54,848 bases of DNA. It comes from Basidiobolus meristosporus CBS 931.73. Lineage: Eukaryota; Fungi; Basidiobolomycota. Position numbers and translations under genes: made by a program. Under the pieces are notes generated by a model. That model was not told the DNA's origin, did no database searches, and saw nothing but the letters and a program-made list of their open reading frames with translations. Of the stretch, positions 4,868 through 54,848 are shown piece by piece (within the stretch, counting starts at the first letter, position 1; every line of letters starts with the position of its first letter). The DNA is taken from positions 1 to 54,848 of the forward strand of contig MCFE01000594.1 of assembly GCA_002104905.1 (NCBI GenBank). Direction: 5' to 3'.

Positions 4868-7800
4868 CTAAATGTTCATACTGACTAGTCCTAATTTTGA
4901 CCTAAGATATTCAAACTTGTCTCTAGCTAATGGTTTGGTAAATATGTCTGCAATCATTTCATCTGTAGGACAGTAATCTAAGCTAACTAAGTTATTCTCT
5001 ATAGCTTCACGTATGAAATGATGTCTAATATCTATGTGCTTGGTTCTAGCATGAAAAGTTGGATTCCTACCTAATTGTATACATCCTTGATTATCTTGAA
5101 ATAAAGTAATAGGCGTTTTTTGACATAGGCCTAAATCTGTAAAGAGCTTTCTTAACCACATTGCTTCTTTTGTAGCTTCACAGGCTGCCATATACTCTGC
5201 CTCTGTGGTAGAAAGTGCTACGGTTGGTTGCTTTCTTGAATTCCATGAAATTGCTCCTTGACAGTAAAGAAAGGTGTATCCTGTGGTGGATCTTCTGTCT
5301 TCTAAATTTCGTCCCCAATCTGCATCAGAGTATCCCACAAGATCTTGTTCTGAGTCCTTATAAGTGTATCTTAAGCAGATATCAGCAGTTCCTTTTAGGT
5401 ATCTAAAAATCCGCTTAACTGCTGCAATATGATCAGATCCATAGCTCTGATTATGTTGGCTGACAACTCCCACTGAATATGAGATATCTGAACATGTTCC
5501 AAGCAAGATATACATCAGACTGCTGACCATAGATTGATAAGGAAAGTCAGGGCTTTCAGATGGCACCAAGCTCTCTTGATTAGGTTGAGTTTTGACCAAG
5601 TTAAGGTTTGTCTCCATTGGGGTAGCTGCAGGTTTACAGTCTTCCATTTTGTACTTCTTTAGTATATCTTGAATATACTTGGATTGGCTTAGGGTAATAG
5701 TCTGGGTACTTCTGTCTATGGAGAACCTAATCCCTAAGTAGTAACTAAGTTCTCCTAGATCGGACATCTTGAACTCCTTAGATAGGCTGGATTTAGTCTC
5801 TTCCAATGTTTCTAGGTTATTGGCGGCTATAATAAGATCATCCACATATAGAGCTAATAGAACTGGATTTGCTCTATCTGGCTTATAGTATATACTATAG
5901 TCAGCATTACTCCTTTTGAAACTCAAAGATTCCAAATAAGAATCTATCTTGCAATTCCAGGCTCTTGGTGATTGTTTGAGACCATATAGTGACTTTTTAA
6001 GCTTGCAGACCAAATGGGGGTTATTTTGGTCAACAAACCCATCAAGCTGGTCCATATACACGTCCTCATCAAGTTCTCCATTCAAAAATGCAGTTTTTAC
6101 ATCCATTTGATGAATAAAAAACTTATATTTGGCTGCAATAGCCAATATTAATCTGATGGAATTAAACTTGGCTACCGGTGCAAAGGTCTCAGTATAGTCA
6201 AGTCCTTTTGTTTGAGAGTATCCTTTGGCTACAAGTCTTGCTTTGTATCTTTCAATTGTACCATCAGCCTTGTATTTTGTCTTAAAGACCCATCTGCATC
6301 CAATTGATTTTTGGTTGATTGGTAATTTGACTAAGTCCCAAGTTTGATTTTCCATCAGGGCCTGATATTCCTCAGTCATTGCAGATCTCCAAAACTTTGT
6401 CTGAGGGCTATTTAGGGCCTATTTTACAGTCTGGGGTTCATCAATATGGACTGAATAGGCATAGGCTAAGTTTGTACCCTCATTGATATAGTAATTTGGG
6501 CTATTTCTTGTCCGATTGGATCTCCGGGCATTTGATACTGGAATGATCACTTCTGGGATATTCCTGGGCACTGATTCTGGCTGAACCACGGTTGTAGAGT
6601 CCTCTGGAGTGAAAAAATTTTCATTGTTTTGCTCTGATTCAATCCTGACAATTGGTGGACTTGAGATCAGATTTTTGTCATCATCTGATGTCATTTTTTG
6701 TGAAAATTTTGAATTTTCATCAAACAACACATCCCTGGACTTGATCAGCTTCTTTGCTTTGGTATTGTAGAGTCTGTATGCCTTACTCTCATTGCAGTAG
6801 CCCAAAAATATGCATTTTACACTTTTTGGCTCAAATTTTGACTGATTTCCAGCCAGTTTTTTGGCATAGGCTGTGCACCCAAATATTCTTAGATGTTCTG
6901 CACTTGGTCTGTATCCATACCATGCTTCAAATGGAGTAGAATCACGAAGTATTCTGTTATAACTCCTATTTTTAAGGTATACAGCAGTGGCAACTGATTC
7001 CGCCCAAAAATCATAGGATAATTTTTGATCATGGATCATAGATCTTGCCATATCAATTATTGACCTGTTAGCTTGTTCTGCTACTCCATTTTGCTGTGGG
7101 GAGTATGGTACAGTAGTCTCTTGCTTTATCCCATGAATTTTGCAGAAGTGGATGAAGAGTTTTGAGGTATATTCTCCACCATTGTCAGAGCGTATTTTCT
7201 TGATTTTTTCACCAGTTTCTCTCTCCACCATGGCTTTAAACTCCCTGAACTTAGACAGAGCTTCTTCCTTTCTCTCCATGAAGTAGACCCATGTGTATCT
7301 TGTATAATCATCAATAAAAGTGATTAAATACTTCATCCCGCCTAAGGATAAATTTTGTATAGGTCCACACAGATCTGAGTGAATTAGATCTAATTTTTTC
7401 TTAGTTTTGATTAACCCAGAGCTCTTGAACAGTTGTCTGGCTTGTTTCCCATATATGCAGGCTTCACAGTGCTCCAAATTAGCTGGGGGATCAACTTTCA
7501 CTCCAGAAATTAGCTGATCTTTGATCATTTTGCGCAAATAATCAAAATTGATGTGCCCAAATCTCCTGTGCCAAAGCATTGGTGTTTCTTCATTTAAGTT
7601 ACTTATATTGGCTTCCAGATATGATGGAATATAAGTCAACTTGTATAGATTCTGATCTCTGATGCCCGAAGCAATATGAGCACCATTTTGATCAGTGATC
7701 CTGCATCCAGAATTGTCAAAACTGAAACTGAGTCCTTCTGCTGTGGCCTTGCTTACAGAGAGTAGGTTCTTGGCTATTTCTGGTACATAGAGTACTTCTT

Positions 7801-8801
7801 TAAAGGTCAGTGTATGGCTTCCTTCACTGCTTCTAAGGTTTACTTGGATAGTTCCTTCTCCCACTGCATCAAGTGTTCTATTGTCACCCATGAAAACCTT
7901 CTTAATTGGAATTTCTTGATATTGGGTAAAAAGTTCTTTTTGGTGTGTAAAGTGTTGAGAAGCTCCAGAGTCAATATACCACGTCTGAGAATCCTTGTTT
8001 GTGGTCATATTTAGTGCAGATATAAATAGTCTATCTTCAGTTGTTGCAGCATTTCCATATTCAGGCTTCTTTTGCTGATAATCTCTCTTTTTGAAACACC
8101 GGTCTGATGTGTGTCCTTTCCTTTTGCAGTAGTTGCAAAATAGGTTGCTGTTGCCTTTGTAGGGTCTTGGGTACCTCCTTTGTTGGTTATCATTGCTTAT
8201 TAAAGCATTTTCTTCTTCCTTCTTATTGGCGCTTGATTTTCTTAATTCTTCATCGAGGAGCCTTCCATTAAGGTCAAATCTTCAGTTCTGGACTCTAGGG
8301 CTGATACAAGGCCCTGAAACCCGTCTGTCAGGCTATTCAGGATGGCAACTATCACATCCTCATCAGTAGTTGGTACGCCCACAGATTCCATCTCATCTAC
8401 CAGCAGGGTATTCTGTTAATTAGATTTTTCATTTCTTCTCCTGGCAGCATCTTTGTAGTAAAGAATTTTCTTCTCAGATACATTTTCTTGGCAGCTGAAC
8501 ATGACTGGTAGGTGTCTTCTAATGCCTTCCAGGCATTCTTTGCTGTTTTTGCTCTTGAGCATTTAATTAGCAATTTGTCCTTGACATTAAGGCAAATGCA
8601 GTTAAAGGCACTTTGTTCTTTCTTCTGGTACTTTAAGGCTTCCTCTCCCACGTTTTTAGGAGGGCATTCTTCTCCCATGACAATATCCCAAAGGCCTCTT
8701 TCTTGTAGCAGCATCTTCATCTTCACCTTCCACACTTGGTAGTTGGATCCATCCAACTTTTCAGCAGAGGGAAAAGTTCCAGTAATAGCAGTAGTAGACA
8801 T
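4868..8801 (-). pseudogene. Copia A gag-pol polyprotein, disrupted
   Basis: MSTTAITG.. from 8801; zinc knuckle CNYCKRKGHTSDRC; PR WYIDSGAS; IN HRRFGH..CEAC, HSDLCGP, RSDNGGE; RT YVDDL; RH GYSDADW. Versus sister copies: 1-bp deletion ~8410, 10-bp deletion ~8268, GAG>TAG at 6419-6421. Confidence 0.93.
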
Positions 8802-30640: not shown

Positions 30641-33606
30641 TGCATTGACTCAATGCATGTTGACTTGGTGCATGGTGCTCTTGTGAAGGATGTTGGCATA
30701 GATTGGATTTGTTGTAAAGATTTGTAATTCCACCTAAGTATACACCTAACTTAGTCACTTAGATCTTTACCCTCAAATCCTAGTGAATAGTGACCAAATT
30801 CCTTGTTGGAATTTACTTAGAATATTTACCCAGAACATGAAAATTAGATAAGTTGTCCAAACAGCCTCAAACTTTGCACACACATTCTTGGGACCTTCCC
30901 CAACCTACTCTATGTGTTTGTTATGGCAAGACTATGTAAAAGTATAAATACTACTTTTACATTCAATAAATCATTAAGTGAAAACCACATAATCTACTTG
31001 TTCTCCCAATCTCTTCCAATATCTCCACAACTCCTACAACAGGTTATGAGCCCCAAGCTGTCACTCTCTGCAATGTCTACTACTGCTAGTACTGGAATTT
31101 CTCCCTCTGCTGAAAAGTTGGATGGATCTAACTACCAAGTGTGGAAGGTGAAGATGAATATGCTGCTACAAGAAAGAGGCCTTTGGGATATTGTCATGGG
31201 AGAAGAATGCCCTCCTAAAAATATGGGAGAGGGAGCCTTAAAGTGACAGAATAAAGAACAAAGTACCTTCAACTGCATTTGCCTTAATGTTGAAGACAAA
31301 TTGCTAATTCAATGCTCAATAGCAAAAACAGCAAAGAATGCCTGGAAGGCATTAGAAGACACCTACCAGTCATGTTCAGCTGCTAAGAACATGTATCAGA
31401 GACATATATTCTTTACTACAAAGATGCTGCCAGGAGAAGAAATGAAAAATCTAATTAACAGAATTACCCTGCTGGTATATGAGATAGAATCTGTGGGTGT
31501 ACCAACCACTGATGAGGATGTGATAGTAATCATCCTGAATAGCCTGACAGACATGTTTCAGGGGCTTGTATCAGCCCTAGAGTTCAGAACTTAAGATTTG
31601 ATCTTAAATTACGTGTATGGAAAGCTCCTGGATGAAGATTCAAGAAAATCAAGCACCAATAAGAAGGAAGAAGAAAATTCTTTAATAAGCAATGATAACC
31701 AACAAAAGATGTACCCAAGACCCTACAGAGGCAACAGCAACCTGTTTTGCAACTACTGCAAAAGGAAAGGACACACATCAGACCCGTGTCTCAAAAAGAA
31801 AGATAATCAGCAAGAGAAGCCTGAATATGGAAATGCTGCAACAACTGAAGATAGACTATTCATATCTGCACTAGATATGACCACAAACAAGGATTCTCAG
31901 ACGTGGTATATTGACTCTAGAGCTTCTCAACACTTTAAACACCAAAAAGAACTTTATACCCAGTATCAAGAAATTCCAATTAAGAAGGTTTTCATGAGTG
32001 ACAATAGAACACTTGATGCAGTGGGAGAAGGAACTATCCAGGTAAACCTTAGAAGCAGTGAAGGAAGCCATACACTGACCTTCAAAGCAGTACTCTATGT
32101 ACCAGAAATAGCCAAGAACCTACTATCTGTAAGCAAGGCCACAGCAGAAGGACTCAGCTTCAGCATTGACAATTCTGGATGCAGGATCACTGATCAAAAT
32201 GGCGCCCATATTGCTTTGGGTATCAGAGATCAAGATCTGTACAAGTTGACTTATATTTCATCATATCTGGAAGTCAATATAGGCAACTTAAAGAAGAAAC
32301 ACCAATGCTTTGACACAGGAAATTTGGGCACATCAATTTTGATTATTTGTGCAAAATGATTTAAGATCAGCTAATTTCCTGAATAAAAATTGATCCCCAA
32401 GCTAGTTAAGGGCACTGTGAGGCCTGCATGTATGGGAAACAAGCCAGACAACCATTCAAGAGATCTGGGTTAATCAAAACTAAGAAAAAATTAGATCTAA
32501 TTCACCAAGTTCTGTGTGGACCTCTGCCAAATGTATCCTTTAGCAGGATAAAGTATTTACTGACTTTTATTGATGATTATACAAGATACACATGGGTCTA
32601 CTTCATGGAGAGAGAGGAAGAAGCTCTGTCTAAGCTCAGGGAGCTTAAAGCCATGGTGGAGAGAAAAACTGGTGAAAAAAATCAAGAAAATTTGCTCTGA
32701 CAATGGTGGAAAATATACATCAGAACTCTTCATCCACTTCAGCAAAATCATGGGATAAAGCAAGACACTGCTGTACCATACCCCCCACAGCAAAATAGAG
32801 TACCAGAATGTGTAAACAGATCAATAATTGATATGGTATGATCTATGATCTGTGATCATAAATTATCCTGTGATTTTTGGGCAGAATCAGTTGCCACCGC
32901 TGTATACCATAAAAATAGGAGTATTAACAGAATACTTTGTGATTCTACTCCATTTGAAGTATGGTAACAATACAGACCAAGTGCAGAACATCCAAGAATA
33001 TTTAGATGCAGAGCATATGCCAAGTAACTGCCTGCAAATCAGTCAATATTTGAGCCACAAAGTGTAAAATGCATATTTTTAGGCTACTGCAATGAGAGTA
33101 AAGCATACAGACTCTACAATACCAAAGTAAAAAAGCCAATCAAGTTCAGGGATGTGTTTAATGAAGATTCAAAACTTTCACAAAAAATGACATCAGATAA
33201 ATACAAAAATTAGATCTCAAGTCCACCAATAGTCAGGATTGAATTAGAGCAAGACAATGAAAGCTTCTTCACTCCAGAGGACTCTAAAACTGTGATTCAG
33301 CCTGAATCAGTGACCAGATATATACCAGAAGAGATCATTCCAGTATTAAGTGCCTGAAGATCCAATCAGACAACAAACAGCCAAAACTACTGTATCAATG
33401 AGGGTAGAAACATTGTCTATGCCTATTCAGTCCATATTAATGAGCCCCAGATTGTAAAGGGCCCTATATAGTCCTCAGATGAAGTTTTGGAGACCTGCAA
33501 TGACTAAGGAATATCAGGCCCTAATGGGGAATCAAGCTTAGGACTTAGTCAGATTACCAATCAACCAAAAATCAATTGGATGCAGATGGCTCTTCAAGGC
33601 AAATAC

Positions 33607-40459: not shown

Positions 40460-43400
40460 AATTCTGGATGCAAGATCACTGATCAAAATGGTACCAATAT
40501 TGCTTTGGGTATCACAGATAAGAAACTCTACCAGTTGAGTTATATTCCATCATATCTGGAAGCAAACATAAGTAACTTAAATGAAGAAACACCAATTCTT
40601 TGGCACAGGAGATTTGGGCACATCAATTTTGATTATTTGTGCAAAATGATCAAAGACCAGCTAATATCTGGAGTAAAAATTGATCCCCCAGCTGATTTGT
40701 AGCACTGTGAAGCATGCATATATGGGAAACTAGCCAGACAAGCGTTTAAGAGCTCTGGGTCAGTCAAAACTAACAAAAAATTAGATCTAACTCACTCAGA
40801 TCTGTGTGGACCTATGCAAAATTTATCCTTAGGTAGGATGAAGTATTTAATCACCTTTATTGATGATTATACAAGATACACATGGGTCTACTTTAAGAAG
40901 AGAAAGGAAGAAGCTCTGTCTAAGCTCAGGGAGTTCAAAGCCATGGTGGAGAGAGAAACTGGTGAAAAAATCAAGAAAATATGCTCTGGCAATGGTGGAG
41001 AACATACCTCAAAACTCTTCATCCACTTTTGCAAAATTCATGGGATGAAGCAACAGACTACTGTACCATACCCCCTATAGCAAAATGGAGTAGTAGAATG
41101 TGCAAACAGATCAATATTTGATATGGCAAGATCTATGATCCATGATCCAAAATTATCCTATGATTTTTGGGTGTTGTAGTGGGGTCACAGTGACACCCAC
41201 AGGCAGATGTGTTCATTCCCATACATTCACTTCCCTAAAAAGGATTACCCCCCCTATATTAGTATCAACCCAAATTGCAATATTTTCTATTCTGTCTATG
41301 TGATTATTACTATGCAACCTGACAAACTATTTGTCACTATTAACCCATTGCACAAGCTATTCCTATTCCTTGCCAAGATGCCCAGATAAGATAGTTACCA
41401 TATAAGGCAGGTACCCCTAAGAGTGCCTATGTCATGTGACCATCCTGGTTTCATAACCCTCCTATCCTACTACCATATGAGGTAACTACATGAGACAGAG
41501 GTTTTATATTACCACTATCTGATTGGCTAGGTGCTACTATGTCTCATGGAGCAATCCACCAAGAATTGGCGCTATTTTTAGTACACAATAACATGATTGG
41601 CTGTCTACTACCTCCTGGAAACTTACAGAAAGTATTTTCTAGCACAAATTTGAGCAGCAAAAAAAAGTATATAAGGGAGGCTATCCCTTAAAATAAATCA
41701 TCCCTCTTCCAATATTCCAACTTATTGATTAGTGAGATCACCGCTACCTATTACCACTACTTTCTGACTCAGACCTGACAATACTCCCAGGAAACCACAC
41801 TGACAGCCAACTGACCTTGGAGGCACTACTTGCGAGGAATACTCAGAGTAGGTATATTTTATTATATTTGTTTGTTTTCCCAAGTTTGCTCTTGTACAGG
41901 CAAAGATACTTTTCAGTCTTTGTAACTATTGGTCAAAAGCTGCATTCTTATCAAGTCCCTGTTGGTGGAGTTTACAGTTGTTTTGACTTTGGAAGCTTTA
42001 GTACATTGTCATCTCAAAGGACATTGAAGCCATTATAAACATTTGTTAAGATGCCAACTAAGTTGGGAATTGTAGTTCAATAGTTTTCCCTTGACAAGCT
42101 TGATGCTTTATCCCCTTTCATATTAGATTAGACAAAAGACCCAGTATTCCTAGCAAGCTTCTGCCAGAGGTTATTGCACCCAGTCAACACCCCACACACA
42201 TTCACACTTGAGAAGTGTTGGCCGTATTTTGCCCTTTGGACTAATACACCACCACAGCGTAATCAGTTGATACAGTTGTATACCTTAAATATAGGAGTTA
42301 TAACAGAATACTTTGTGATTATACTCCATTTGAAGCATGGTATGGATACAGACCAAGTGCAGAACATCTAAGAATATTTGGGTATACAGCATGTGCCAAG
42401 AAACTGCCCAAAATCAGTCAAAATTTGAGCCAAAAAAGTGTTGAATTTATATTTCTGGGCTACTGCAATGAGAGTAAGGCATACAGACTCTACAATACCA
42501 AAGCAAAGAGGCTAATCAAGTCTAGGGATGCGTTGGTTGATCAAAATTCAAAATTTCCACAAAAAAAGACATCAGATGATGACAAAAACCGGATCTCAAG
42601 TCCACCAATTGTCAGGATTGAATAAGTGCAAAACAATGAAAACTTTTTCACTCCAGAAGACTCTACAACCATGGTTCAGCCAGAATCAGTGCCCAGGAAT
42701 ATCCCAGAAGTGATCATTCCAGTACCAAATACCGGGAGATCCAAGTGGACAAGAAATAGCTCAAACTACTATATCAATGAGGGTACAAACTTAGCCTATA
42801 CCTATTCAGTCCATACTGATGAGCCACAGACTGTAAAAGAGGCCCTAAATAGCCCTCAGACAAATTTTTGGAGACCTGCAATAACTGAGGATTACCAGGC
42901 CCGATGGAAAATCAAAATTGGGGCTTAGTCAGATTACCCATCAACCAAAAATCAATTGGATGCAGATGGGTCATCAAGACAAAATATATAGCTGATGGTA
43001 CAATTGAAAGATACAAAGCAAGACTTGTTGCCAAAGGATACTCTCAAACAAAAGGACTTGACTATGCTGAGACCTTTGCACCGGAAGCCAAGTTTAAAAC
43101 CATCAGATTAATATTGGCTATTGCAGCCAAAATAAGTTTTTCATTCATAAAATGGATGTAAAAACTGCATTTTTGAATGAATCACTTGATGAGGATGTGT
43201 GTATGTACCAGCCTGATGGGTTTGCTGGCCAAGATAACCCCCATTTGGTCTGCAAGGTTAAAAAGTCTCTATATGGTCTCAAACAATCACCAAGAGCCTG
43301 GAATTGCAAGATAGATTCTTATTTTGAATCTTTGAGTTTTAAAAGGAGTAGTTCTGACTAAAGCATATACTATAAGCCAGATAGAGCAAATCCAGCTCTA

Positions 43401-46094: not shown

Positions 46095-47162
46095 TGTAGC
46101 GGGGTCACAGTGACACCCACTGACAAATGTGCTCATTCCCATATTTCTACTTGCCTATTTTTCTATTACCCTTATATTAGTTTTATCCCACTTATCTTAC
46201 TTGCTTGGTACTATTACATAAGCTGGCTGACTATCACACCTGCTTACCTGTTACATAAGTTATCCCTCACTTTATGTAAGATTGCTTGAAGTAAGTGCTT
46301 TGAAATTAGGCAGGTACCTGCACCAATACCAGTAACAAATTCCTAAATTGTGTCACCATTCCAACAACTTTCATACCATATTTGGTATCCCTATGTTACA
46401 CAGGTTGCAGAATACTGATTTCTGATTGGTTGGGAGTGCTGTGTCTCTTAGACCTTTTGATACCTACTTAGAACATTCTTAGCTCATTCTGGTGCCTTTA
46501 AGATTTCTGGTTGGCTACTGGAACCTTCTAGAACACCATGATTAGTAATCACTTTGTCAGTATGAAAAATATATAAGGAAGGCAATCCCTCATCAGTGAA
46601 TCATCATCCCTTTTATCAATATACTAACTTGTTGATTAATGTGTTCACTGCCACCTGCTGCTACCTGAACTTCCAACCACAGACCTCAGGACACTCCCAG
46701 GAGACCATGCTGACAGCCAACTGACCTTAGAGGCACTACTTGTGAGGAATATACAAAGTAAGTTTCTTTTATTATATTTGATTCTTTCCCAAGTTTGGTC
46801 TTGTACAGGCAAAGATGCTTCTCTGTCTTTGTAACTATTGACCACAGCTATATTCTTATCAAGTCCATGCTGGTCAAACTTACAATTGTTTGGACTTTGG
46901 AAGCTTTAGTACATTGCCATCTCAAAGGATGCTGAGCCCAGCACATACTTTTGTTAGGGCACCAACTAAGCTGGGGATTGCAGCTTAATATTTTTCCCTT
47001 CACAAGCTTTTGGCTTTATTCCCCATCACATTAAATTAGAGACAGATCCCATGTATTCCTAGTAAGCTTTGCAAGAGGTTATTGCACTCAGTGAGCACCC
47101 CACACACAAAACACCAGAGAAGTGTTGTACGTATCTCTCCCTTTGACTTATACACCACCACA
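46095..47162 (+). mobile_element. Solo LTR2 (1068 bp)
   Basis: TGTAGCGGGGT..ACACCACCACA, 4-bp TSD CTAC/CCAC. Confidence 0.85.
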
Positions 47163-47765: not shown

Positions 47766-48820
47766 TGTAGTGGGGTCACAGTGACACCCACTGACAAATG
47801 TGCCCAATCCCATATATTTTACTTCCCTAAATCTATACTACCTGTGTTCAAATTTTATCCCATTTAGCATATCTGATCAGTACTATCCCATAAGCCAGTT
47901 AACTATGATACCTGCTTATTTATTTCACACATTATCCCTTGCTTTATGTAAGATTCTAGTTGTATGTGCTTCTATACAAGCCAAGTATTTGTGCCAAGAC
48001 CTATGATAAATGACCAATTTGTGTCACCATCCCTATGATTCTTACTTTATATATGGAGTCCCTATGTTGCACTGGATTCAGAATACTGATCCCTGATTGA
48101 TTGGATGTGCAGTACCTCTTAGGACCTTCCAGCATCTACTTAGAACATTTTTAGCTCATTATGATGTCATTTAGAGTTCTATTGAACTCTGGAACCTTCT
48201 GGCACTTCATTATTAGTTATCACTTAGCTTGGGAGAAAGGTACATAAGGGAGACAACCCCTCAACAATAAACCTTCATCCCTTTCATCAATATACCAGCT
48301 TGTTGATTAGTGTGATCACTGCTACCTGAACTTCCAATCCCAGACCACTGGACACTCTGAGGAAACCACACTCACAGCCAACTGACCTTGGAGGCACTAC
48401 TTGGGAGGAATACTCAGAGTGGTATCTTTTACTATATTTGATTCTTTCCCAGTTTTGTTCTTGTACAGGTAAAGATACTTCTCTGTCTTTGAAACTATTG
48501 CCACAGCTATATTCTTATCAAGTCCCTGCTGGTCAATATACAATTGTTTGGACTTTGGAAGCTTTAGTACATTGTCATGTCAAAGAATGCTGAGCCCAGC
48601 ATATACTTTTGTTAGGACACCAACTAAGTTGGAGATTGTAGTTCAATAGTTTACCCTTGACAAGCTTGTGGCATTATTCCACTTCACCTTAGAGTAGAGA
48701 CAAAGTACAAGTATTCTTAGCAAGCTTTTACCGGAGGCTTTTGTACCCAGTTAACACCCCACACACAAATACTTGAGAAGTGCTGGACATTTCACTCCCT
48801 TGGACTTATACACCATCATA
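47766..48820 (+). mobile_element. Solo LTR2 (1055 bp)
   Basis: TGTAGTGGGGT..ACACCATCATA, 4-bp TSD CTGT/CTAT. Confidence 0.85.
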
Positions 48821-49269
48821 CTATAGCACTGTCTACCATACAGGCAGAGTATAGGGCAGCCTGTGAGGCAACAGAAGAAGCAAAGTGGCAAAGAATGCTC
48901 TTTTAAATCTAGGCCAATGTCTAAAAATGCCTTGTACTTTGTTCCACAATAATCAAGGATGTTTACAAGGAAGTCAAGTCCAACTCTTTATACTTGAATT
49001 AAGCACATAGATATCAGATTTTGCTTCATACATGAAGCTGTGGCAAGTAGCTTAGTAAGCTTAATGCACTGTCATTTGGATAAAATGGTTGAAGAGATAT
49101 TCACCAAACCATTTGCTAGAGACAAGTTTGAACATCTTTGGTCAAAATCTGAACTAGTCAGCATAAGTATTTAGTTGAGTGGCAGTCTTGTAAAAGTTTG
49201 TAACTTCATCTAAATATTTACCTATTGTATTGAAATAGATCATTACCTTTAAATCCAAGAGATTAATAG

Positions 49270-49798
49270 TGTCATGATCACATGACAACCATGAACACCC
49301 ATGCCAAGTTTCAGCTTCCCAGCTCAATTTCTAAGAGATTCCTTCCGGAACCTTCTACCACCTTCCAGAAAGTTCCTGACCATTCCAAACCATTGTTACA
49401 CAATGGAACATTCCATGGAAGCTTTCCATCGTATTTTTTATAGTCCAGTACCATATATGGAAATACCAGGTCACATGACTTAGTCACATGATCAGGTGAC
49501 CCAATCCATTTCCCCATCCTGTCTCAGTACCGTGTCATCTATGTCATTATCCCCAGCACCATTGCTGTGCCTCACCCCACAACCCCATTAGTATTAGCTA
49601 ACATCTCTCGGCATCAATATAGCCAAAAAGTATATATAGTCCTATCCCCCCTTAAGTATTCCTCAGTCTGATAAACACAGGTCTTGAATAAACAGCCTTG
49701 CCTTGGAAATCTGTCTTGCCTTGTTGATCCACACCTAAGTCCTTTCCTGGTCCTGCCTTGCCTAGCTCTACTCTCCTGCCTTGTGTCTATTCATAACA
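49270..49798 (+). repeat. Chromovirus 5' LTR (529 bp)
   Basis: TGTCATGA..TCATAACA termini; TATATATA at 49631-49638; the first ~188 bp recur at 54659-54848. Confidence 0.93.
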
Positions 49799-49810
49799 GT
49801 TTTATCAGAC
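49799..49810 (+). promoter_or_regulatory. Self-priming PBS GTTTATCAGACT
   Basis: Exact reverse complement AGTCTGATAAAC at 49665-49676 in the LTR, just downstream of the TATA box. Confidence 0.88.
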
Positions 49811-50204
49811 TCCCCTGACTTACCTGTGGATCCCTGCCTTCTGCCCAAAGTTTGAAGAAAACTTGTAAAAGGAATACTCACCATAAGTATCACCCATCAT
49901 CTTTCCCTAGTCTTGTCCTATAAAGGCAAAGATACTTTATCTTTGTAAAACTATTGGTCAAAGCTGCATTCACTTTATTACCCTGCTGGTGGAGTTTACA
50001 GTTGTTACAGTATTGGAAGCTTTAGTACAATACTCTATCAAAGGACATTGAAACCAGTACCTTCTGAAGTGACGCTAACTTATTTAAGTTGGGGATTGTG
50101 GCTCAATAGTTGTATTCTTGACATACTAGTGGCTTTACAAACCCACAATCTAGTTTAGTATATTCCAGTATTCCTTGCAAGTTCATCCGCCTTCCTCTGC
50201 TACC

Positions 50205-51137
50205 ATGTCCAACCTAGAGCTGAACTTTGCCCAGCTCATGGCTGCCTTTACCCAACTGCAGCAAGACCATGCAGACCTCAGAAACACTCTTGCTCAGTTC
50301 CAGAACCAAAGTGTCCAGCAAACTAGCCATGTCCCAGTCTACCAAGAACCCAAGTATACTCCTGCTACCAAGTTCAATGGCTCTCAGAATGAATTCCGTG
50401 GCTTCATCAACATGGTGAAGAACAATCTTGCACTCCAGCCCAACCGGTACCCCACTGACCAGGCCAAAGTTGGTTTCATCTCCAACCTGCTTACTGGTAC
50501 AGCTCTCAAGTGGTTCTCCCCATTAGTGGAGACCAACTCTCCCCTCCTCAGAGACTACCAAGCTTTCCTCACTGAAATGGAGCTAACATTTGGTAACCTT
50601 GACCAAGCCAGAACTGCTGCCAACAAGATCAAGACCCTCAAGCAAGGGAACAAACCAGCATCAGTCTATGCCTCAGAATTCCGACAACTCTCCAGTGACC
50701 TCAGCTCCTGGGGTCAAGCAGCCTTGATTAGCCAATTCCAAGATGGCCTCAATGATGAAGTTTGTGATCTGCTACTCACACTCCCAGATCCAGATACATT
50801 GGTTGAAGCTATGCACCAAGCAATCCGGTGTGATAACAGACTATTCCAGAAGAAGCAAAAGAACCGTCAAAGACACATTCCTGTTGCAGTCCCAGCCCCT
50901 CCTGCTCCCCAAGTCACTCCAGAAGATCCTATGCAGATTGATAGTGCCAAATACAGGAAACTATCAAAGAGTGAAAAGTCCAGACGTCAACAAGCCAACC
51001 TCTGTCTATACTGTGGCCAACCAGGTCACTTTGCCAAGTCCTGCCCCAACAAGAAGTCCAGCTTCAAGCTGATGCAGTCCTCCAGCAACCAACCTGATGC
51101 AGATCTGTCGGGAAACTCCAATGTCCAGTTGCACTGA
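50205..51137 (+). CDS. gag: Chromovirus Gag
   Basis: [39 protein letters not shown], zinc knuckle [14 protein letters not shown]. Confidence 0.96.
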
Positions 51138-51230
51138 CAGGCTTGCAACTGGACCCACCCATGAAAATCCAGCATATCCAAGAATCTTCCTTTGCCACAA
51201 AATCTATCCAGTCCTTGAGAATGCCTGTCA
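51110..51230 (+). promoter_or_regulatory. -1 ribosomal frameshift signal (slippery heptamer plus stem-loop/pseudoknot)
   Basis: G GGA AAC in the gag frame (51110-51116), 6-nt spacer, 11-bp stem 51123-51133/51144-51154; loop TGACAGGC is complementary to GCCTGTCA at 51223-51230. Confidence 0.85.
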
Positions 51231-54200
51231 AAATCCAGATCCCTGACTCCAGTCCTGTCCCAGCCCTAGCCCTGATTGATTCTGGTGCTTCATCCTGTTT
51301 CATTGACCAAGCCTTTGTCCAGAAGCACTCTATTCCTGTTACCTTGAAATCCTGTCCAGTCCAAGTAGAAGTTATTGATGGAAGATCACTCTCCTCTGGT
51401 GCCGTTACCCATGAAACATGCTTACTCCAGCTATCCAGTACTGCCCACCAAGAAAGAATCGCCTTCAACATCATCAACTCACCACACTATCCTATTGTGC
51501 TTGGAAGCTCATGGCTGAGCTACCACAATCCGAGTATTGATTGGAAATCCAAGATCCTGTCATTCACCAGATCCCACCAAGTCAACTCCATGAAATCTCC
51601 AGACCCTGATAACCGTGAAAAGACGGTTGCCAACAGTTCAACAGCCCAAGATACCTTGCCAGCTGAAGGAGCCCCCTCAGCAACTATACCAGCCAAGTAC
51701 CAAGAGTTTGCCCATGTCTTTGACAAGAAGAATGCAGAACTCCTCCCTGACCATCGGCCTTATGACTGCCCTATTGACCTTGAAGATGGAAAAGTCCCTC
51801 CATTTGGCCCAATATATAACCTCTCCCAGCCGGAGTTGAAAGAACTCCATGGTTATATTCAAGAAAACCTCCAGAAGGGTTTTATTCAGCACTCCAAATC
51901 ACCTGCTGGAGCCCCAATCCTCTTTGTCAAGAAGAAGGATGGCACCCTCAGAATGTGTGTGGACTACCGTGCTTTGAATAAGATCACAGTCAAGAACCGC
52001 TACCCCCTGCCCCTGATCAACACACTGTTGGATCAGCTATCTGCTGCCCAAGTCTTCACCAAGATAGACTTGAGAGGAGCTTACAATCTTGTCAGAATCA
52101 AGCCTGGTGATGAATGGAAAACTGCCTTTCGCACAAGATATGGTCACTTTGAGTACAAAGTAATGCCATTTGGCCTCACCAATGCCCCTGCTGTGTTTCA
52201 ACACCTCATGAATGACATATTCCGCGAATACCTTGACCAGTTTGTGGTAATCTACCTTGATGATATTCTCATATACTCCAAGAGCCAAGATGAACATGAT
52301 GAACATGTCAAGAAAGTATTGAGAAAACTAGACTCTGCCGGTCTCTATGCCAAGTTAGAGAAGTGTGAATTTGACCAGAGAGAAGTAGAATTTCTGGGTT
52401 ACCTCATCAGCCCTGAGGGAACAAGAATGGACCCAGAGAAAGTTGACTCAGTCCAGTCCTGGAAAACTCCAAGCTCAGTCAAGGAAGTACAATCCTTCCT
52501 GGGATTTGCCAACTTCTATCGCAGGTTCATAGCCAACTACTCCAAGATAGTCACCCCTCTCACAAAGCTTACCCAGAAGAACACACCTTTTGCCTGGAAT
52601 GAGGAGCAATCCAGCTCATTCAACCAACTCAAGAAATCTTTCCTGAAGGCCCCCCTGCTTGCCCACCCTGACCTTGAGAAGCAATTCATAGTGGAGACTG
52701 ATGCTTCTGATTTTGCCCTTGGTGCCATACTCTCCCAGTATGATGAGGACAATGTGTTGCACCCCATTGCATTCTACTCTCGGAAGTTTTCCCCTGCAGA
52801 GATCAACTATGATATCTATGATAAGGAGTTGCTTGCCATCATTGTAGCCTTTGAGCAATGGAGACACTACCTGGACGGTGCAAAACACAATATCAAAGTC
52901 TTCTGTGACCATAAGAACCTTGAGTACTTTACAACTTCCAAAGTACTAAACCGGAGACAAGCCAGATGGTCACTCTTCCTGTCCAGCTTTGACTTTACTA
53001 TCACCTATAGACCTGGTGCAAAGCAAGGAAAGCCTGATGCCCTGTCCAGAAAAAAGGAATATGCCCTGGAAGAGGGAGATGATGCCTGTTGGCAAATGGA
53101 ACACCCATTGCTGAGCAAGAAACATTTTGAGATTCTTGCCACCCAGTCCTCAAGTCTTGTCATCCCTTCATTCCTAGTAAGGATATCAGAATCCCAAGCC
53201 TCTGATATGACTTCCAGCACCATCAAGAAATATCTGGAATCCCCAGTTGGGCCCCCTCCCAAGTTCCCAAACATCCAGAACCTGCATTTGGTAAACAACC
53301 TCATCTACCACAAGCAGCAGCTTTATGTCCCAGACCTTGCCACCCAGCTAGACATCATTAAGTCTCGGCATGATTCAATGGCTGCAGGCCACTTTGGTAC
53401 TGCCAAAACCTTGAATGCTATCAAAAGAGATTTCTGGTGGCCTAGAATGATAACTCTTATCAAAGAGTACATTCTGACTTGTGATATTTGCAACCGTGCA
53501 AAACCAGCCAGACACCAGCCCTATGGACTTCTTCAACCCCTGCCTATCCCAGAACACCAATGGAGATCTATATCTATGGACTTCATTACTGACCTCCCTG
53601 AGTCATGTGGCTTCAATGCTATACTTGTAGTGGCTGACCGGCTGACCAAGATGGCTCACTTCATCCCTTGCTGTAAGAACACTGATGCAAAAGAAACTGC
53701 TGCTTTAGTCCTGAAGAATATTTTCCGCCTTCATGGTATCCCCAGTGATATTGTGTCAGATAGAGGCCCACAGTTTGTGTCCAAGTTTTGGAAACACTTC
53801 ATGCAATACCTTGGTGTTCAAGTCAAGCTCTCTACTGCCTTCCATCCACAGTCTGATGGCCAGACTGAAAGAATCAACCAGATTCTGGAGCAATACCTCC
53901 GGTGCTATATCAATTACCAGCAAGACAATTGGGTTGATCTACTCCCTGTTGCTGAGTTTGCCTACAACAACTCAAGCCATAGTGCAACCGGTTTTACACC
54001 ATTCTATGCAAACTATGGATTCCACCCTCAGTTTGATATCCAGATTCCAACAAACCCAATGAGCCCACATGCGGCTGAACATGCCCAAGCAATCCAGGAC
54101 ATCCAGAACACCCTCAAGGAAGAGCTATCCTTAGCTCAGGAAAGCTACAAGAAATTTGCCAATCTAAAACGGCATCCCAGCCCTGATCTTAATGAAGGAG

Positions 54201-54658
54201 ATTCTGTATGGTTGCTCAGAAGAAACATCAGCACCAACCGCCCTTGTGACAAGTTGGATTTCAAGAAACTTGGTCCCTTCAAGATCAAGAAGAAGCTTAG
54301 CCCTATAGTATATCAGCTACAGTTACCAGCAAGTATGAAAATCCATGATACTTTCCATGTGTCCCTCCTGGAGCCGTATTGTAGGAACACATTGCCAAAC
54401 CGGCAAGAAGCAAAGCCCCAAGCTATCCAGGTTGACCAACATCAAGAATTTGAAGTTAAACAGATTCTAGACTCCAAGTATATCCGGTCAAAGCTGTACT
54501 ACTTAGTAGACTGGATTGGTTATGGCCCAAGTGACCAAACATGGGAACCAGCTACACATCTCACTAATTGTCAAGAACTAGTTACCCAGTTCCACCAACA
54601 ATATCCTGCAAAACCTGCCCCAAAGGGAAACAGAGCTCCGCCTGGAAGAGGAGAATAG
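51110..54658 (+). CDS. pol: Chromovirus Pol (PR-RT-RH-IN-chromodomain), -1 frame relative to gag
   Basis: [60 protein letters not shown]. Frame open from 51098 to the TAG at 54658. Confidence 0.97.
54644..54658 (+). promoter_or_regulatory. Polypurine tract
   Basis: GGAAGAGGAGAATAG directly before the 3' LTR. Confidence 0.85.
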
Positions 54659-54848
54659 TGTCATGATCACATGACAACCATGAACACCCATGCCAAGTTT
54701 CAGCTTCCCAGCTCAATTTCTAAGAGATTCCTTCCGGAACCTTCTACCACCTTCCAGAAAGTTCCTGACCATTCCAAACCATTGTTACACAATGGAACAT
54801 TCCATTGGAAGCTTTCCAATCGTATTTTTTATAGTCCAGTACCATATA
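54659..54848 (+). repeat. Chromovirus 3' LTR (partial)
   Basis: No substitutions versus the 5' LTR over the visible part; two 1-bp insertions near the window end. Confidence 0.95.

Follow-up and report, generated by a model that had tools for sequence, protein, structure and literature searches.

Evidence for probable Tf1-type self-priming in an intact Ty3/gypsy chromovirus of the zygomycete-grade fungus Basidiobolus meristosporus

How is reverse transcription primed in an LTR retrotransposon whose 5' LTR is not followed by a tRNA-type primer-binding site (PBS)? This question is raised by the end of a scaffold of Basidiobolus meristosporus (here, the window, which is the whole stretch of 54,848 nucleotides analyzed), where repeat comparison, open reading frames, and a domain search delimit one LTR retrotransposon in the region from 49270 to 54848. 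The 5' LTR is directly followed by GTTTTATCAGACT, which is not a PBS of the TGG type. The absence of a TGG tRNA-type PBS had been noted in the original prediction; the 25 nt past the LTR end contain no TGG, and the nearest one, at 49828, is too distant and lacks support in the relatives. The RNA of Tf1 anneals to the PBS through its first 11 bases, and cleavage by RNase H falls between bases 11 and 12 (PMC7175516). The Tf1/sushi group, whose members are known from fungi, vertebrates, and some non-seed plants, has self-priming as its common feature (PMC6317226; PMC4600332; bioRxiv 10.1101/2022.12.06.519325), and Tf1 requires two further duplexes, the “pretzel” (10.1101/2022.12.06.519325). The original prediction proposed self-priming of this type for the window element. 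Our analysis suggests that the element very probably self-primes its reverse transcription in the manner of Tf1, with the first 11 nt of its own RNA, a reading that is supported by the anatomy of the element and by the full covariation of primer and PBS among no fewer than 21 related families.

The features of the element are collected in Table 1. The pol gene lies in the −1 frame relative to gag and is open from 51110. By Pfam, Pol carries, in this order, protease, reverse transcriptase, RNase H, integrase zinc finger, rve, SH3_Tf2-1, and Chromo (E 1e-13) domains, and its catalytic residues, including the acidic residues of RNase H, are invariant in an alignment with 10 relatives. Gag also matches the RTL/LDOC family in the Pfam search, and its best solved relative is PEG10; the best solved relative of Pol is Ty3 Gag-Pol (7q5b, E 1e-151). 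Two 1-nt indels are the sole differences between the LTRs over the 190 nt of the 3' LTR. Given the open gag and pol genes, the catalytic motifs, the polypurine tract, and the LTRs, the element is therefore, as judged from its sequence, an intact Ty3/gypsy chromovirus of B. meristosporus. Both this description and the view that the host is an early-diverging fungus had been put forward from the DNA alone, and both hold: B. meristosporus is a zygomycete-grade fungus. The element may be active at present. A tblastn search of the scaffold with gag and pol returned no second chromovirus copy, only the element itself, and the exact gag product has no record in other assemblies. A motif AATAG found upstream of both LTRs was taken as a chance occurrence because of this absence of another chromovirus copy; the relatives show the normal order of polypurine tract, 3 nt, and TGT.

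Table 1. Observed and predicted features of the Basidiobolus chromovirus and the basis of each assignment (positions are those of the window)
Feature	Position	Strand	Basis or remark
5' LTR (TGTCAT...ATAACA), 529 nt	49270..49798	+	Start: repeat with 3' LTR; end ...ACA: homology to relatives with both LTRs
Predicted U3	49270..49664	+	Within 5' LTR
TATA box TATATATA	49631..49638	+	Sequence reading
Predicted R and U5	49665..49798	+	Within 5' LTR
Predicted self-primer AGTCTGATAAA, first 11 nt of transcript (C−1/A+1 start)	49665..49675	+	Exact reverse complement of 49801..49811
CACAGGT, possible flanking-duplex arm	49676..49682	+	Possible partners ACCTGTG at 49822..49828 (downstream of PBS) or CCTTGTGT at 49779..49786
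TGAATA	49685..49690	+	Pairs with TATTCA at 49788..49793 in the minimum free energy fold; U5-IR-like helix adjoining the PBS duplex
Candidate polyadenylation signal AATAAA	49687..49692	+	Sequence reading; would put the end of R some tens of nt past +1
Spacer GT between LTR end and PBS, 2 nt	49799..49800	+	1 to 3 nt in relatives, mostly GT
Predicted primer-binding site TTTATCAGACT	49801..49811	+	Exact complement of 49665..49675; paired with nt 1 to 11 in minimum free energy and centroid folds
gag: capsid and CCHC zinc knuckle	50205..51137	+	Pfam Retrotrans_gag, Ty3_capsid, DUF4939, zf-CCHC
Slippery heptamer G GGA AAC	51110..51116	+	−1 phase into pol; gag stop 19 nt on
pol: protease, reverse transcriptase, RNase H, integrase, SH3 (Tf2-1 type), chromodomain	51143..54658	+	Pfam
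Polypurine tract GGAAGAGGAGAA	54644..54655	+	3 nt ahead of 3' LTR; relatives have purine run, 3 nt, TGT
3' LTR, first 190 nt only (scaffold ends)	54659..54848	+	Repeat with 5' LTR

From 49799, directly past the ...ACA end of the LTR (49798), the sequence reads G-TTTT-ATCAGACT, and the PBS arm begins 2 nt past this end. Its exact reverse complement starts at an A preceded by a C, 27 nt past the end of the TATA box; counted from the first T of this box, the distance is 34 nt. The original prediction had placed the partner at this same distance from the TATA box and had described the complement as 12 nt long; the complement is real but extends over 11 nt, and the quoted GTTTATCAGACT, in which a T was dropped, is absent from the window. 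Mismatches bound the 11-nt duplex on both sides (C49676/T49800 and C49664/C49812), and its length therefore equals that of the Tf1 duplex. The primer/PBS pair is the longest inverted pair of the entire LTR-leader region. When the LTR was shuffled, 6 of 20,000 shuffled LTRs carried the reverse complement of any 11-mer that begins 0 to 4 nt after the LTR (about 3 in 10,000); an analytic estimate of the chance is about 6e-4, with the position behind the TATA box not yet required.

For comparison, we used the DNA of 87 loci of pol relatives with 35 to 62% identity. Homologs of Pol number in the thousands, although the best are only 62 to 65% identical; among the homologs listed, the nearest named relatives are fungal (Cunninghamella, Berkeleyomyces, and Microbotryum). 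At least 21 related families share the same anatomy, in which a TATA motif, a segment of 9 to 12 nt, the LTR end, a spacer, and the exact reverse complement of the segment follow one another. The TATA motif is found in 18 of the 21 families, 31 to 39 nt before the first base of the primer (31 to 35 nt in 17 of them). The segment nearly always starts with an A after a pyrimidine, the ...ACA end of the LTR lies 53 to 373 nt downstream of it, and the exact complement begins 1 to 3 nt past ...ACA in the 21 families, with GT as the most common spacer. In the relatives with both LTRs, the 5' and 3' copies share the same ...ACA end, the complement follows the 5' copy only, and 5-bp target duplications are visible. 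A composite signature (ACA, spacer, a complement no shorter than 9 nt, and a correctly spaced TATA) was present on the coding strand in 25 of 88 sequences, versus 1 of 88 on the reverse strand, which served as the control. None of the fetched contigs of the relatives begins at a primer as a transcript would.

While this geometry is conserved, the primer sequence is not. Across the 21 families there are 15 distinct primer sequences (for example, CAGTCTCGACAA, ATTCCGGTTCAA, AAGGTGAACAA, ATCGAGTTCTT, CAGTTCGAATAT, AGTCTGAAAT, AGTTTGTTAAT, and AACGGTCAA), each matched perfectly by its own PBS. The primer of L046, AGTCTGATAAT, is one base off that of the window element, and its PBS carries the compensating change. 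Compensatory changes in related families, which the original prediction had named as a check, are thus found in abundance. Because the PBS differs between families and yet matches the LTR of its own element, a shared tRNA primer is ruled out. The conserved geometry combined with the variable primer supports self-priming of the Tf1 type as the probable mechanism. The three “LTR2” copies of the same scaffold (41175, 46095, and 47766) were rejected as comparators; the common part is only a leader module of about 270 nt, with no alignment across the primer and PBS.

Folding of the predicted 5' RNA at two lengths gave minimum free energy (MFE) and centroid structures that close with nt 1 to 11 paired to the PBS, and the MFE structure likewise closes with the 5' end on the PBS in 20 of the 20 families folded. 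Taken together, the R-U5 region does not fold with exceptional stability (z about −1.3). Neither of the two candidate auxiliary helices of the window element is above chance: the CACAGGT (49676–82)/ACCTGTG (49822–28) duplex has a predicted energy of −11.2 kcal/mol and a shuffle P value of 0.19, and the TGAATA/TATTCA helix has a shuffle P value of 0.13. For the Tf1-type flanking duplexes, the combination of 18 families gave Fisher P values of 0.07 and 0.41 versus shuffled controls. The extension of the fold that had been proposed between ACACAGG (49675–81) and CCTTGTGT fares accordingly, in that both segments are present, but their pairing is not above chance and is absent from the MFE fold. 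Separately, a 9-nt complement between AGTATTCCT (49655–63) and AGGAATACT (49870–78) nests around the primer/PBS pair. The overlapping segment AAGGAATACT (49869–78) has two complements: AGTATTCCT, immediately ahead of the predicted +1, and AGTATTCCTT (50167–76), immediately ahead of the gag ATG. The pair of 49869–78 with 50167–76 flanks the leader module of about 270 nt that is common with the LTR2 family, and its arm cores, AGGAATA and GTATTC, are invariant in a four-copy alignment.

The probable course of priming can be outlined as follows. The predicted first base of the transcript is A49665, about 33 nt downstream of the TATA box. From there, the leading 11 nt of the RNA (AGUCUGAUAAA) would fold back over the remaining 125 nt of R-U5 onto the PBS, and the RNase H of the element itself, by analogy with Tf1, would cut after nt 11 (A49675), i.e., between nt 11 and 12. 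Prerequisites for this cut are seen in an RNase H domain with the conserved acidic residues and in a duplex that is closed off by a mismatch beyond nt 11. Once released, the 3' OH could prime minus-strand strong-stop synthesis from 49800 back to 49676, through U5 and R. Later, the plus strand would copy the primer, so that the PBS would be rewritten in each replication cycle and the pair would stay perfectly complementary. Regeneration of the PBS by plus-strand copying of the primer is what the usual scheme of LTR reverse transcription leads one to expect, and the title of Atwood-Moore et al. 2006, a paper cited in PMC6317226, points the same way. Such regeneration would explain the perfect pair in so many families.

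There are other ways to read the same arrangement. Priming might still be by the element's own RNA but in a modified form, with a start upstream of 49665 (e.g., near 49650 to 49655) that leaves the 11-mer internal and calls for processing on both sides or for a longer nested structure via AGTATTCCT/AGGAATACT. The 9-nt complement around the primer/PBS pair would fit such a structure, and a PBS copy just upstream of the primer in several relatives indicates that upstream sequence may matter. Nevertheless, we regard an upstream start as improbable: the complement begins at a pyrimidine-A step in 21 families, the distance of this step from the TATA motif (in the 18 families that have the motif) is the normal spacing of a start site, the duplex of the window element ends in a mismatch exactly at −1, and the RNA of Tf1 begins with the primer itself (PMC7175516). 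Still less probable, and indeed very unlikely, is a reading in which the inverted repeat takes no part in priming and is either a relic or an RNA structure of the LTR that serves packaging, dimerization, or termination, the element being dead or primed by some other means. That the overall fold is not exceptional would agree with such a feature, whereas the positions of the two arms speak against it; the downstream arm always lies 1 to 3 nt past the LTR end, where a PBS must be, the upstream arm lies at the predicted +1, and both positions hold in many diverged families with intact open reading frames. In addition, no other PBS candidate is present.

A host tRNA fragment as the primer, in the way of the half-tRNA priming known in Ty1/copia lineages (PMC6317226), with a coincidental match to the LTR, seems scarcely credible. 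The complement of the PBS does contain a loop-like motif, CUGAUAA (CTGATAA inside AGTCTGATAAA), that resembles the anticodon loop of tRNA-Ile(GAU). However, no tRNA-like sequence follows past the 11 nt, an 11-nt LTR match is expected by chance at only about 3e-4, and the PBS sequences of sister families are unrelated while each fits its own LTR. Furthermore, the only tRNA of the scaffold, Leu-CAG, shares no complementary stretch as long as 6 nt with the priming region, and Rfam gave no match in 49200–50300 at E values up to 1.

In 4 to 7 of the 21 related families, U3 carries a copy of the PBS of 6 to 10 nt after the TATA box and ahead of the self-primer (L001:8195–8227, L013:1966–1996, L058:1392–1411, and L006:4297–4315), and the predicted start site is thereby spanned by a local hairpin (shuffle P ≤ 0.008 in four families). 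The window element has no such copy. The U3 copy might mask the copy of the primer in the 3' R. A broader proposal is that a large, mostly metagenomic radiation of fungal chromoviruses, including the Basidiobolus element, primes through a simpler structure than that of Tf1, namely a bare panhandle of 9 to 12 bp between the 5' end and the PBS, without the auxiliary “pretzel” duplexes, and that a subset of families has the U3 copy of the PBS instead, with a possible role in masking the primer copy of the 3' R or in regulating priming; we consider this proposal doubtful.

The surroundings of the element and the contigs of its relatives offer a few further observations. LTR2 is represented by three LTR copies of about 1 kb (TGTAGTGGGG...CCCCACACACA) at 41175–42200, 46095–47108, and 47766–48767, each with its own TATA box and with the module of the chromovirus leader in its R/U5 part. 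Pol fragments of the Ty1/copia type (RVT_2, rve, gag_pre-integrs, and Pol_BBD) are found at 4868–8008 (−) and 31598–32359 (+), with several related copies across the scaffold; the original prediction had suggested that a copia element next to the chromovirus is primed by a half-tRNA. The middle of the scaffold contains host genes for a RING finger protein, the cyclase-associated protein CAP, and a Zds_C protein. The CAP open reading frame matches K493DRAFT_326761 of B. meristosporus CBS 931.73 with 100% identity, which confirms the host. Over the whole window, the observed/expected ratio of CpG is 0.44, versus 0.96 for GpC; the low CpG ratio of this repeat-rich scaffold is compatible with methylated cytosines or with biased mutation. 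In the metagenome contigs L001 to L004, a related element is arranged as head-to-tail units (pol-LTR-gag-pol-LTR-gag) with a period of 5739 nt and one LTR per unit. Either the units form genuine tandem arrays with LTRs in common, or a repeated element was assembled cyclically.

At the sequence level, the element appears to belong to the Tf1/sushi group, as indicated by its anatomy and the covariation and, indirectly, by the Tf2-1-type SH3 domain, the PEG10-like Gag, Ty3 as the closest solved relative of Pol, and the fungal hosts of the nearest named relatives. Self-priming is the mechanism expected for this clade, and the element is a further example of established Tf1/sushi-type self-priming. 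The term “self-priming” was not found in the literature searched on zygomycete fungi, which is no proof of its absence there. Our finding leaves the knowledge of how reverse transcription is primed unchanged; it extends a well-characterized priming mechanism to a zygomycete-grade fungus, and the many independent compensatory changes indicate that a large and for the most part unsampled radiation of fungal chromoviruses uses this mechanism generally. There are also two practical uses: (i) the rule for the priming signal lets annotators set the U3/R boundary, and hence the predicted start of transcription, from DNA alone, and (ii) the signal helps to flag young, potentially mobile copies in Basidiobolus.

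Among the known systems, Ty3 of Saccharomyces cerevisiae has the closest solved Pol, with the same domain order. Ty3 is primed by tRNA-iMet and has a split PBS, whereas the window element lacks a TGG-type PBS and possesses a chromodomain. Self-priming has been predicted from LTR/PBS complementarity, as it is here, for Tj1 of S. japonicus, Tcn1 of Cryptococcus, the Tcn1 clade of mosses and club mosses, and the vertebrate sushi-ichi elements (PMC4600332, PMC7175516, PMC6317226). Those predictions were mostly made from single elements, in contrast to the covariation over 21 families that is available here. The likeness to the sushi group extends to Gag, which is most like the sushi-derived PEG10 and matches the RTL/LDOC family. 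Tf1 and Tf2 of Schizosaccharomyces pombe, the founders of self-primed reverse transcription, share with the window element the 11-nt duplex of the RNA 5' end and the PBS just past the 5' LTR, which is predicted here, as well as the lack of a tRNA PBS, the Ty3/gypsy type, a chromodomain integrase, and an LTR ending in CA (PMC7175516; 10.1101/2022.12.06.519325). They differ in that their primer sequence is another one, and the “pretzel” duplexes of Tf1 have counterparts without statistical support in the window element. Moreover, gag and pol of the window element are separate frames joined by a −1 frameshift, while the fission yeast elements are discussed as having a single open reading frame or an in-frame stop (10.1101/2022.12.06.519325), and the host of the window element is not a fission yeast but a fungus of the zygomycete grade.
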